Part shown: positions 38,066-42,407 of the stretch, in pieces
How positions within the stretch are numbered: the stretch's first letter is position 1
How the letters are laid out: every line of letters begins with the position of its first letter
Source: Podarcis bocagei
Taxonomy: Eukaryota
Length of the DNA: 64,000 nt
NCBI GenBank assembly: GCA_964188305.1
Contig: OZ076885.1
Reading direction: 5' to 3' (one strand)
Position numbers and translations under genes: made by a program
The notes under the pieces: model-generated
The model's input: only the letters and a program-made list of their open reading frames with translations
What the model was told of the DNA's origin: nothing
Databases searched by the model: none

Positions 38066-39234
38066 CTATATATACATACACAGACAGAGACAAAGCATAA
38101 GAGGAGGAGAAAAAGGAAATGCTGATTCCCAATTCAAAGTCAATAAATGCGGAATCAAAGTTCACCCAGAATATATTTCAAGCACTTCATTGTTTTAATA
38201 TCAAATAATTGACCCACACTGCTCCTATATCCACATGTACCTAACTTGAACACTTATATACTGAGATTTCATAGTTTGGCTTGGGCTCTTAAACTGTATC
38301 TATTCAACTTAGAATTGATGGCTGTTGTGAAAGTAATTTGCAGCATAACTGTATCTGCCAAGATGTCTGGGGCTGATTTTTACTAGTAGCATTGAAATAG
38401 TTCTATAACCCACAAAAAACTAAAAACTGGTATGCTGCACACTTAGCCCTACAACGCCCTGATTATGTGCAAAGTCCGTAGATGGAATATTGTTACCCTT
38501 TCCCCTTGAAACAGAGAATAAGAAATCTGCCATATACTACAGCAGACATTTCAGCAAAGATACAAATGAGCTGGAATGCTGAGCTGCGGAAATTTCCTAT
38601 TTGCATATTTTAACCAATCTTGAATTAGGAAAGAAAAGAGATTTCCAGTAATAGACAGGAATGTATTTGCTCATAAACACATAAAGCAGTAATTTTGCTT
38701 TATGTAACCTTTATTAACATGAGTCCTCATGGAGTTCCTCTCCATCCAAAAAAACAACAACAACAACGCTGGGGCACTGGCACATCAGTGAAGACAACAC
38801 CTTGCTCAGAACTCAGCTATTCAAAAAGCCACACTTTGGCTAGGCAAACCATGGTTTAGTGACATGTGTAAACCAGGCCAGTGTGTGCCTCAAGTCAGAA
38901 ACAACTGAAAATCAGCAGGCTAGAAGCATAGTGCAAGTATCAAAGTCATGAGCAGAAGGCACAGGATGGAGAGATTGGATAGTATAACAACACTTGTAAT
39001 CTTAGTATAAAAACTGGTACTTTTGCCTTGTTCAGGTAGTCCAGGGATGTCCATCTTCCAAGAGACTGCGATCTACTCACAGTATATAAAAAAAACTGGC
39101 AGTGATCTACCCATTGTCACTGAAGGATGACAATGTCATCTACTACAATGTTATCTACTAACCAACCACTCTTTACACTGATATGTACTTCTACCTGCCA
39201 ACCTAACACTGCCGCATTTTGAGGTCAGATGTAC

Positions 39235-39442
39235 CTTGCAATTTCCTGCGATGGAAGCGTGGAGATCCCAGGAAGCTGTTCTTGATCGAGTTGAGCCGTG
39301 TTCTCCAGGGCATTCCTCCAATGCTGGGGCTGGATGGTGGCGTAGGGTTGGGTGTGCCTGCTGGGCTCTCCTTTGGCGTATGGACAGGTGTCCCCTTGGG
39401 GGTAGGGAGGGGACTGCCCCTTGGAGAGGGGTGAGGGGTGAC
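39235..39442 (-). CDS. BRSK2: BRSK2 coding exon, 208 nt, [69 protein letters not shown](V)
   Basis: Lies within ORF 39203..39688(-). Acceptor catcatacag|GTC, donor CAAG|gtacat; phase 0 to 1. Confidence 0.96.
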
Positions 39443-39847
39443 CTGTATGATGGGGATAGATTTGGTGCTTGGGTCAGTACTAGAAGGGAGCAATCTAACA
39501 GGAGACATAGGGTTGGTTTGCACAGTAGGAACAGCCAGCTGCGGGCTAAACCCAGGAGCAGGTGGACGGCTCTGAGTGTTCTGTGCAGGAGAATTTGGGG
39601 AAGGAGGGACTGTAGCATTGCTAGAGGGCAGGGGATTGGATTTGGTAGACTGGAGTGGTTTTTCAGCCAATCTGTTCTTGGATGGCAAAGTCTGTGTCTT
39701 TGGATTGGGTTGAAGTGCTGGCTTTGGCTGGAGAACATGTCCGGGCCTGGAAGCATTCCTACAAGCATCGGAGTCCAGGGAGACTTGGGGGCGGGGGGTG
39801 AAAGGGAGGTCAGGAGTCTGAGGGGGGATGAAAAATTTTCTGATAGG
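39443..39847 (-). CDS. BRSK2: Candidate in-frame 5' extension (405 nt, 135 aa, Pro/Ser/Thr-rich) of the VTPHPSP exon via an upstream alternative 3' splice site
   Basis: Acceptor ctttctctgtgtgtatcttgtag|CCT at 39848/39847, phase 0. The frame is open through [15 protein letters not shown]...KSIPIIQ into VTPHPSP. A 230-nt AG-free zone lies upstream. Confidence 0.72.
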
Positions 39848-40068
39848 CTACAAGATACACACAGAGAAAGTACCCATGCATTTCAAGAAAAGCAAAACGC
39901 ACACGCACATACGCACAAAGTGGGTGAATAGAGAAATAAAGCCCATTTGAGTTGCGGTTGTGAGCCACATCACAAGGAGATCAGAGTTATGGAGGTGAGG
40001 GTGAAGGAGGTGGGGGGTTAGGGAATTGCAAAGAAACAAAAAACAAACACAAACAAAAAACAAAAAGA

Positions 40069-40079
40069 CATGCAGTTAG
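40069..40079 (-). promoter_or_regulatory. Candidate distal branch point CTAAC abutting an RBFOX motif TGCATG
   Basis: The minus strand reads CTAACTGCATG at the 5' edge of the 230-nt AG-free zone. A second CTAAC is at 40021-40017 and a second TGCATG at 39880-39875. Confidence 0.55.
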
Positions 40080-41450
40080 CTGGGAACACAGCATAGTCAA
40101 CAACAGCAGCAGTGGCGGTAGTGAAAACAACAGTTTTGTCACAAGCTTCATCATATTAACCAACCATGTGTCAGCAAATAAAAAAACCACAGAGCAAAAA
40201 CTAACATGAAGGAAAAGAAAATAAGAAACTAAAAGGGTGGGCGAGGGAGGGGAAGCAGCAAGAGAGAGCGAGAGAGAGCGAGAGCGAGAGCGAGAGAGAA
40301 AAGGCCGTACCCCTGAGCTGTTCTGACTGTCTCACAGATAGAGAGAGAGAGAAGAACAGGGCTGAAGGGAGGTGGGGAAGAGGAAGGAAGCATCATTCAA
40401 GCCACAGGGAAACCTGACATGTAAGCATGTAAGGCTGAGTGTGCCCTCTCTCCCAGCTCAAAACGTCTACCACAATCAAAAACAGCAAGGAAATGCAGAT
40501 CAAAATAACATGTGTGCAGCAGGTAATGATAGAAGCACACAGATTACTACACACATCGACTCTCCTCAGTCAAAGCACCACAAGTTTCAATAACATGGAG
40601 AGAGTTTGTGAGTGAGGCTGAGGAGGGGGAAAGCCTCTATCATTTCATCACCATTCCTTTCCTGGCCTTCCACCCAGAGGGACCCAGTTTTCTCTGGCAG
40701 GCTTTACTATATGAAATCTTAACAGCTCATGGAACCATGGGCCAGTTTGGGCTTCAAATTTTAAGAGACCGTGGAACTACGGCCACTTTAGGGTTTAAGT
40801 AAAATACCCCAAGGGTCACCAAAGAAGGTTTGCTTTCTAAGTGCCCCTTTTACATCTAAGTCCTCCTGTCATCAGACAGTCTTATAGTTTTAAAAAACAA
40901 AAGAAAGAAACAGTCCTCAGTTTTTATGACACAGTACCAGAATTCCATTCTGTGGCTGATCATTGTGTTTTATGCAGTAACCCCCCCAAAAAAACACACA
41001 ATTCATAATCAGCCATAAATGAAGTCAGAAAAGGGGATTATGTTGTTTTGTAAAACAACAACAAAACTTAACTAGCAAGTGTTAGATTCAAGAACAGTCC
41101 AAGAAAAAATAGAAATTCAATACACTCAGGGAACAAAACGCAAAAAAGAATACTGTTAGAATAAAAGTGTGTTTTTTTAAAAAAAGCAGAACATATTCCT
41201 TTCATAGAGCATGGATTAGGAAAAAAGTAACAATTAAATTGTAGTTACTCTTCATTTGTGAATGAGTTCAAGCCCATTAGAAGAATCACAAATATGTAAC
41301 AATGTATTGCCCTGCAGTTTGGGCAATTAACTTATATAAGAAGTGAAAACTGCATAAAACTGTGATAATGGCATATAACTGTATGTAAGAACAGAAGCTG
41401 AATTGACTAAGAACAGCAGAAGTGTAAATGAACTGGTTCCCTGCCTGCAT

Positions 41451-42346: not shown

Positions 42347-42407
42347 CCTTGGACTGCTGAGTGGGCTGGTCGACAGGCCAGAGGAAGCTCCACTGATTGA
42401 GCGAGAC
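42347..42407 (-). CDS. BRSK2: BRSK2 coding exon, 61 nt, (R)SRSISGASSGLSTSPLSSPR
   Basis: Manual translation. Acceptor tgtttactcag|G, donor AGG|gtaagt; phase 2 to 0. Confidence 0.96.

Follow-up and report, generated by a model that had tools for sequence, protein, structure and literature searches.

Gooding et al. (2006, PMC1431707) showed that 0.68% of introns have an AG-exclusion zone of at least 100 nt, a stretch upstream of an acceptor in which the dinucleotide AG is missing, and that such zones indicate distant branch points and are over-represented in alternative splicing; the study makes no mention of BRSK2. In a second system, Rbfox bound upstream of an exon usually inhibits it, with GCACG acting as a secondary Rbfox motif and GUGUGU/GUUGUU being bound by the Rbfox partner hnRNP M (PMC11874969). 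Here, we describe a locus that shares features with both systems, located in a 64,000-nt stretch of DNA from Podarcis bocagei (contig OZ076885.1, assembly GCA_964188305.1; the whole stretch is referred to as the window). According to a motif scan, a BRSK2 (SAD-A)-like gene lies on the minus strand of the window, which covers its 3' two-thirds. The element under study, positions 39847-39443 on this strand, is very probably the upstream part of an ancient long BRSK2 exon with two competing 3' splice sites, the distal of which would be used by way of a distant branch point.

BRSK2/SAD-A governs neuronal polarity, synapse maturation and insulin secretion, and it is a neurodevelopmental-disorder gene. 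In mouse SAD-A, the autoinhibitory sequence (AIS) corresponds to residues 519-530, the form studied was the short form, and the role of the linker connecting the UBA domain with the AIS was called an open question (PMC4686854). The long exon had been noticed in an earlier inspection of the window, here called the sequence-only reading. The observation is real, and all of its statements about the sequence itself hold.

The exon extension and its conservation

The upstream constitutive exon, at 42347-42407 on the minus strand, has the boundaries cag|G...AGG|gtaagt, ends with ...LSSPR in phase 0 at 42347, and is followed by the donor GT at 42346-42345. The common part of the next exon (VTPHPSP...RRKLQ) occupies 39235-39442. 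Directly upstream of it, the frame 39847-39443 contains no stop over 135 codons (22% proline), is in frame with both flanking exon parts and reads into VTPHPSP at 39442. The proximal ("canonical") 3' splice site AG at 39443-39444 is the end of the last extension codon, CAG (Q), while the distal 3' splice site AG at 39848-39849 lies within an in-frame TAG at 39848-39850 and has an AG at the equivalent place in all of the other loci. The sequence-only reading was thus correct in describing a 405-nt open frame that reaches an acceptor at 39847 in phase with the donor at 42347. Since the distal AG belongs to the bounding stop, the statement that the frame is open exactly to the acceptor is partly true by construction. 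The same in-frame layout of alternative 3' splice sites (AG, donor phase and open frame) was found here and in 8 other loci.

Dinucleotide-preserving shuffles kept the extension frame (frame 0) open in 0.5% of cases, and two or more open frames were observed in none of 5000 dinucleotide shuffles. Three-base periodicity was pronounced in the extension (chi2 21.8, p 0.0013, rank 15 among 1414 windows scored). All eight sense-strand stop trinucleotides of the stretch fall in one frame, and the stretch is additionally open in a second sense frame and in one antisense frame. The three longest stop-free stretches of the window, counting both strands, are all located within 39150-39930. A +1 sense frame (729 nt) and an antisense frame (747 nt) were observed to be open across the whole long exon, within 39154-39928. 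We attribute these additional open frames to the codon periodicity of a coding region rich in Pro, Ser and Thr; the periodicity of a real coding frame produces them. An antisense gene was considered and rejected, as no Pfam family was found for the searched part of the antisense open reading frame (ORF) and the exon-junction evidence lies on the minus strand. No Pfam family was detected for the 135-aa peptide either, and a search of phage DNA was blank.

The extension comprises 122-158 codons without a stop in nine loci: the window, five mammal-like contigs (L002, L004-L007) and three genomic teleost contigs (L001, L008, L009). A transcript contig, L003, was available in addition. Extension length was 122-123 codons in the mammal-like loci, 135 in the window and 148-158 in teleosts, with identities to the window of 54-59% for mammal-like loci and 37-43% for teleosts. 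The distal acceptor is the exact point at which similarity sets in, and the in-frame translations upstream of it are unrelated or interrupted by stops. Across the squamate-teleost distance, all length changes of the extension consist of whole codons. The alignment contains 26 invariant columns, all of whose residues are kept in the window, and these open with a P-x-R-[KR]-[FL]-x-x-P-P block, continue in the middle with [KR]TQTLP[SA]K...PLQ...SNPLP, and close with K...Q.

The ratio of nonsynonymous to synonymous substitution rates (dN/dS, Nei-Gojobori), which had been proposed as a check in the sequence-only reading, was 0.25-0.35 in all 10 mammal-like pairs, with no frameshifts. Among the same loci, the nucleotide p-distance was 0.11-0.16 without gaps in the extension, compared with 0.28-0.41 and 4-31% gaps in the flanking intron, a divergence approximately 2.5-fold lower in the extension. 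As judged from the sequences compared, the conservation and the dN/dS values rule out a chance ORF and argue for constraint at the protein level; together with the shuffles and the periodicity, they led us to reject chance as an origin of the frame.

Regarding the encoded peptide, the sequence-only reading had emphasised additional PxxP motifs and phosphorylatable S/T-P sites (serine or threonine followed by proline). Six S/T-P sites are indeed present in the extension of the window, but the feature is not a conserved one: the count is 0-2 in mammal-like copies and 6-12 in teleosts. Because the number varies from 0 to 12 between lineages, S/T-P sites do not represent a conserved function, whereas the invariant motifs do. 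The additional PxxP motifs, too, are not the feature that has been conserved. AlphaFold2, run on the nine-sequence alignment, predicted no secondary structure (mean per-residue confidence, pLDDT, 59.9; predicted template-modelling score, pTM, 0.12). This prediction agrees with the enlarged disordered linker proposed earlier and fits a disordered segment that bears short linear motifs. In our view, [KR]TQTLP resembles a basophilic-kinase or 14-3-3 mode-1 pattern; no paper was found on the motif KTQTLPS.

Transcripts and gene models containing the extension

Evidence for the splice junction was provided by L003, an intron-free contig of 1956 nt that was assembled from one teleost sequencing run and carries protein P0027. 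Translation of L003:3-260 covers the junction between ...LSSPR and the extension, running to RTQTLPAKPRPSEKPLQT, and the ORF continues through the common exon, a VPTQEDMS micro-exon, the AIS, the KA1_BRSK domain and the C-terminus. The exon-exon junction is positioned exactly where the sequence-only reading had placed it, and its occurrence in an intron-free contig indicates that the long form is a spliced mRNA in at least one teleost. The KA1_BRSK domain (PF21122) was assigned on P0027, the product of this orthologous transcript, whose relatives are named BRSK2. The corresponding junction 42347->39847 is probably used in Podarcis bocagei as well.

Queries taken from the window covered 39443-39847 or 39443-39927. 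An exhaustive protein search of 1.84 billion representatives (E<=0.001) retrieved four proteins of 255-292 aa with E values of 4e-12 to 2e-6, one of them from a cluster that includes a carp-family protein (Cirrhinus mrigala). All four run from extension-like sequence into the VTPHPSP exon (...RRKLQ) and then into intron-like text, so these ORFs were called on unspliced DNA. A word search with the bare 135-aa peptide gave no match within a length range of 74-236 aa, largely because this range excludes the 255-292 aa relatives; it also leaves out full-length named isoforms (> ~500 aa). Some later matches (176-236 aa) fell inside the range and yet were missed by the bare peptide. Further searches starting from the extension part of database proteins identified 22 teleost and 10 mammal-like proteins, and no sauropsid relative was present among the protein matches retrieved. 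As the protein searches were keyed on the extension, only extension-containing proteins were retrievable and short forms were invisible by design. Shares of the stretch found in sequencing runs (0.3-0.66, organisms A-K) were not used as evidence, since divergence and partial coverage are inseparable in these values; none of the runs is recorded as RNA.

Named gene models agree with the transcript. In the goby Knipowitschia caucasica, the UniRef entry "Serine/threonine-protein kinase BRSK2" (P0030) joins ...LSSPR directly to the extension, and in the catfish Tachysurus ichikawai, "BRSK2 isoform X1, partial" (P0020) begins exactly at PLRKFCVPPQ, with the first residue of the extension. The extension was also found in other named fish models, namely P0028 (Larimichthys crocea), P0029 (Pleuronectes platessa) and P0023. 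In the BRSK2 model of the rodent Apodemus speciosus (P0038), ...SSPR is joined to PVRKF, and most of the extension is present. The peptide of exon 42407-42347 precedes the extension in L003, P0030 and P0038, as it would in the window. The long isoform is not new, being already contained in public fish and rodent gene models. The expectation of the sequence-only reading that predicted isoforms would exist in non-mammalian vertebrates was borne out by the goby, the catfish and the other fish models, and its claim of an in-frame long exon form using an upstream 3' splice site gained support from conservation, selection and the junctions in L003 and P0030. Its restriction to non-mammals was wrong, because mammal-like genomes retain the extension and the rodent model carries it.

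Two peculiarities were observed among these records. P0038 joins PVRKF directly to AALRPNPKTQ, skipping approximately 38 codons that are open and conserved in L002 and L004-L007; the skip reflects either an artefact of ab initio prediction or one more splice inside the extension (TTT|gtcctg ... ccacag|GCC in L002). At L001:1315-1325, the calling of protein P0004 treated TGA as a Trp codon. Under the code applied here, translation of the locus therefore fails to reproduce the query, and the N-terminal 30 residues of P0004 carry no meaning; its extension part is unaffected.

AG-free zone, RBFOX-type motifs and the remaining locus

The distal acceptor is preceded by the longest AG-free run on the minus strand of the window, a 230-nt AG-exclusion zone at 39850-40079. 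Between 40120 and 39840, minus-strand AGs are present only at 40081-40080, 39849-39848 and 39841-39840, so the zone is real. Of the 4410 gaps between AGs on this strand, none is larger than the resulting one of 232 nt (median 10; 99.9th percentile 120). The zone is 67% pyrimidine, and AG was absent in 24 of 20000 mononucleotide shuffles of it. At its 5' end, immediately after the AG at 40081-40080 and approximately 229 nt before the distal acceptor, lies CTAAC (40075-40079), the candidate distant branch point. It is adjoined by the RBFOX-type motif TGCATG (40069-40074) and then by a T/GT-rich tract (40030-40068) comprising a polypyrimidine tract and GU-rich stretches. A second TGCATG, followed by GTGTGT, is located at 39875-39880, 28-33 nt before the distal acceptor. 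The sequence-only reading had described this arrangement accurately.

Conservation of this region was assessed in an alignment of 8 loci, namely the squamate window, four mammal-like and three teleost loci. At -140 to -230, the order of CTAA[CT]-n-GCA[TC]-G and then a T-rich tract does not vary, with CTAA[CT], GCA[TC]G and the T-rich run each present in all 8. The branch-point element reads CTAACTGCATG in the window, CTAACTGCACG in mammal-like loci and CTAAT[ATG]GCATG in teleosts. Beside CTAA[CT], the motif is TGCATG in the window and L009, GCATG in L001 and L008, and TGCACG in the four mammal-like loci. Before the same acceptor, the mammal-like loci have AG-free zones of 269, 273, 219 and 258 nt, and the teleost loci have zones of 198, 276 and 198 nt. 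Closer to the acceptor, (T)GCATG was found 16-75 nt upstream in 8 of the 9 loci (the window, L001, L002 and L004-L008), compared with a background rate of 4.2% for TGCATG within 80 nt in the window, and GTGTGT/GTTTGT runs accompany the motifs in the window and the mammal-like loci. The distal acceptor itself has the context ...tgtag|CCT in L002, L005, L006 and L007, ...cag|CC in L004, L001 and L008, and ...aag|CC in L009.

Together, the conserved element and the AG-free zone support a putative distant branch point accompanied by RBFOX-type motifs, as suggested in the sequence-only reading. CTAAC would be the branch point of the distal site, and control of that site by RBFOX appears plausible from its motifs; no paper was found linking Rbfox to Brsk2 splicing at this exon. 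Conservation extends to the proximal acceptor: ...atacag|GT[CGA]AC[CG]CC is kept in all loci compared. Approximately 32 nt before it, within the extension, TACTGAC (39473-39479) represents a candidate branch point for the short form. The branch-like TACTGAC/ACTGA[AC] is conserved approximately 30 nt before the proximal acceptor in other loci, where the codons T-[DE] are kept.

Two further pyrimidine-rich tracts were observed on the minus strand. At 40300-40235, approximately 150 nt upstream of the candidate branch point, a CT/CTCTCG microsatellite leads into a C-rich run, and these pyrimidine repeats could be a binding place for PTB-type proteins. The second-longest AG-free run of the strand, a long CT-rich stretch of 224 nt (4134-3910), directly precedes the exon with GSPLSNFFDVIKQLF, whose acceptor reads ...tataccccag|GC at ~3910; this exon is a candidate for, and could be, a second distant-branch-point exon in the same gene. 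Alternative skipping of a BRSK2 "exon 19", which may or may not be this exon, has been reported for human cells (bioRxiv 10.1101/2025.03.02.641068).

Elsewhere on the minus strand, the motif scan located BRSK-type exons at ~61.5 kb, ~29.4 kb and ~24.7 kb, an exon with VPTPEEMSNLTPESSPE at ~38.06 kb, where a micro-exon spans ~38063-38015, an exon with FRAEYK.../YSVTF at ~26.8 kb, and the GSPLSNFFDVIKQLF exon at ~3.9 kb. BRSK-specific sequence, including FFDVIKQLF, was recognised in the neighbouring exons. Separately, a 444-nt stop-free ORF at 15670-15227 on the minus strand, within 15760-15086, shows the strongest three-base periodicity of the window (chi2 ~30). Its translation contains an Ala-rich run and no BRSK2-like sequence, and a repeat, the remnant of a retro-element or chance could account for it.

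Competing explanations and comparison with known systems

In the mechanism we propose, two branch points would compete for the 3' splice sites of the exon. The distant CTAAC and its adjacent polypyrimidine tract would serve the distal AG at 39849-39848, which the 230-nt AG-free zone would make the first AG met, giving the long form. TACTGAC within the extension would serve the proximal AG at 39444-39443, giving the short form. RBFOX, possibly with GU-binding partners, may block the distal site by occupying the GCAUG beside the branch point and the GCAUG approximately 30 nt before the acceptor, so that the short form would be made in RBFOX-rich mature neurons and the long form in cells poor in RBFOX. 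The long product would gain 135 unstructured, Pro-rich residues between ...LSSPR and VTPHPSP, an insert that may alter docking or autoinhibition rather than catalysis.

Among the alternatives, the one that survives best holds that in this species the long exon predominates or is the sole form, with the proximal acceptor minor and regulated, and the direction of regulation reversed. The spliced long form in the goby model and in the one transcript contig found, the extension in several other teleost BRSK2 models, and the consensus CTAAC with its long adjacent tract at the distal site all fit this proposal. We nevertheless consider it unlikely, as every locus keeps ...atacag|GT and the branch-like site upstream of it, the searches retrieve extension-containing proteins only and so hide short forms, and sites with a distant branch point and regulatory motifs within their AG-free zone are typically regulated rather than constitutive (PMC1431707).

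Slightly less probable again is the proposal that the stretch was ancestrally coding and still is in fish, but is here a relic or a conserved intronic splicing-control region that now only aids the proximal acceptor. Its 3' end does contain the branch site and tract of that acceptor, the curated mammalian literature describes the short linker only (PMC4686854), and the transcript evidence comes from a teleost. Against it, squamates parted from mammals and teleosts long ago, yet the window keeps the frame intact together with the 26 invariant residues, the acceptor, the AG-free zone and CTAAC-TGCATG; blocks distant from both splice sites are kept as amino acids, and the mammal-like loci show coding-type selection.

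A plain intron without any long isoform, its open frame owed to C-rich, G-poor composition and its AG-free zone to a pyrimidine-rich tract, could draw on the two sense and one antisense frames open over the stretch, the "AG" that a bounding TAG supplies automatically and the pyrimidine content of the zone, but is scarcely credible given the rarity of both features in shuffles (frame 0 open in 0.5%, zone AG-free in 0.12%), the peptide conserved between squamate and teleosts with whole-codon indels, the dN/dS values, the junction in a spliced transcript contig, and the fact that extra open frames are expected from codon periodicity.

A long exon with two competing 3' splice sites therefore remains our preferred explanation, and several points weigh against it. 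The distal AG doubles as a stop, and any TAG-bounded ORF would seem to be flanked by an acceptor; the local pyrimidine tract of this acceptor is broken by G's. Conservation of the final 10 codons of the extension may reflect the needs of the proximal splice site and not those of the protein. Proof at the transcript level consists of one assembled contig from one teleost run, with none from a squamate or sauropsid, and the gene models containing the extension may be ab initio. The label "mammal-like" derives from one named rodent model, and "teleost" from named fish models. As for the RBFOX motifs, mammal-like loci have GCACG rather than GCAUG beside the branch point, the acceptor-proximal GCAUG is absent from L009, and L005 has GCATG without the leading T at that acceptor-proximal place. 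Finally, no paper was found on the long BRSK2 exon, its distant-branch-point architecture or its control by Rbfox.

A broader proposal would be a pan-vertebrate switch between two branch points, gated by RBFOX-type motifs on the distant one, that toggles a conserved 122-158-residue module of the UBA-AIS linker, with its invariant [KR]TQTLP and SNPLP motifs, and thereby tunes autoinhibition, docking or localisation. We regard this as tentative, and rather doubtful in its complete form. If it were true, the module would have escaped functional study because mammalian work used the short form; if curated clinical transcripts lacked the module as well, a variant falling inside it would be classed as deep-intronic, and this in a neurodevelopmental-disorder gene. 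More generally, a deeply conserved, alternatively included linker module would offer a concrete handle on the open question of the UBA-AIS linker. For annotation, the stretch should count as coding in squamates too.

In comparison with described BRSK2 sequences, the teleost models and L003 share with the window the gene, the exon, the ending ...KS[IV]P.IQ|VTPHPSP and the invariant motifs, and in P0030 and L003 the junction after ...LSSPR likewise falls at the start of P-x-R-[KR]-[FL]. They differ in their longer and more divergent extension, in an S/T-P count that reaches 12, and in having GCATG after CTAAT. Mammal-like ORFs (P0001, P0002 and P0031-P0037) and the rodent P0038 belong to the group with the shorter extension and the higher identity to the window. 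Their loci share the acceptor ...tgtag|CCT in 4 of 5 cases (...cag|CCT in L004), an AG-free zone of 219-273 nt and CTAAC at -189 to -209, and differ in having TGCACG for TGCATG beside the branch point and few S/T-P sites. The human paralogue BRSK1 (SAD-B) presumably has a constitutive longer linker, running from ...LSSPR to a TP-rich block and containing ...KTQTLPS...; if so, the extension predates the BRSK1/BRSK2 duplication. BRSK1 was absent from the four matches of the exhaustive search at E<=0.001, so any similarity to it is limited to a short motif.

With RBFOX-repressed exons and Rbfox1-LASR modules (LASR, large assembly of splicing regulators), the locus shares (U)GCAUG upstream of the site, adjacent GU-rich runs, GTGTGT and GTTTGT, and, in the mammal-like copies, the secondary motif GCACG (PMC11874969). 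It differs in that one motif adjoins the putative branch point. By analogy, a motif placed on the putative branch point suggests direct competition with branch-site recognition. Such competition between a motif and a branch site is known from exon 4 of calcitonin/CGRP. Since the fish-tetrapod split, the GCAUG element next to the candidate distant branch point has been retained.

An architectural parallel is provided by distant-branch-point exons, with which the locus shares a zone longer than 100 nt, whose 5' end bears a branch consensus next to a pyrimidine tract, and motifs inside this zone (Gooding et al. 2006, PMC1431707). The difference is that the candidate site is here one of two competing 3' splice sites rather than the acceptor of a cassette or mutually exclusive exon. 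For splicing biology, the locus would thus offer a clean natural pair of competing 3' splice sites, one of them with its branch point more than 200 nt away.

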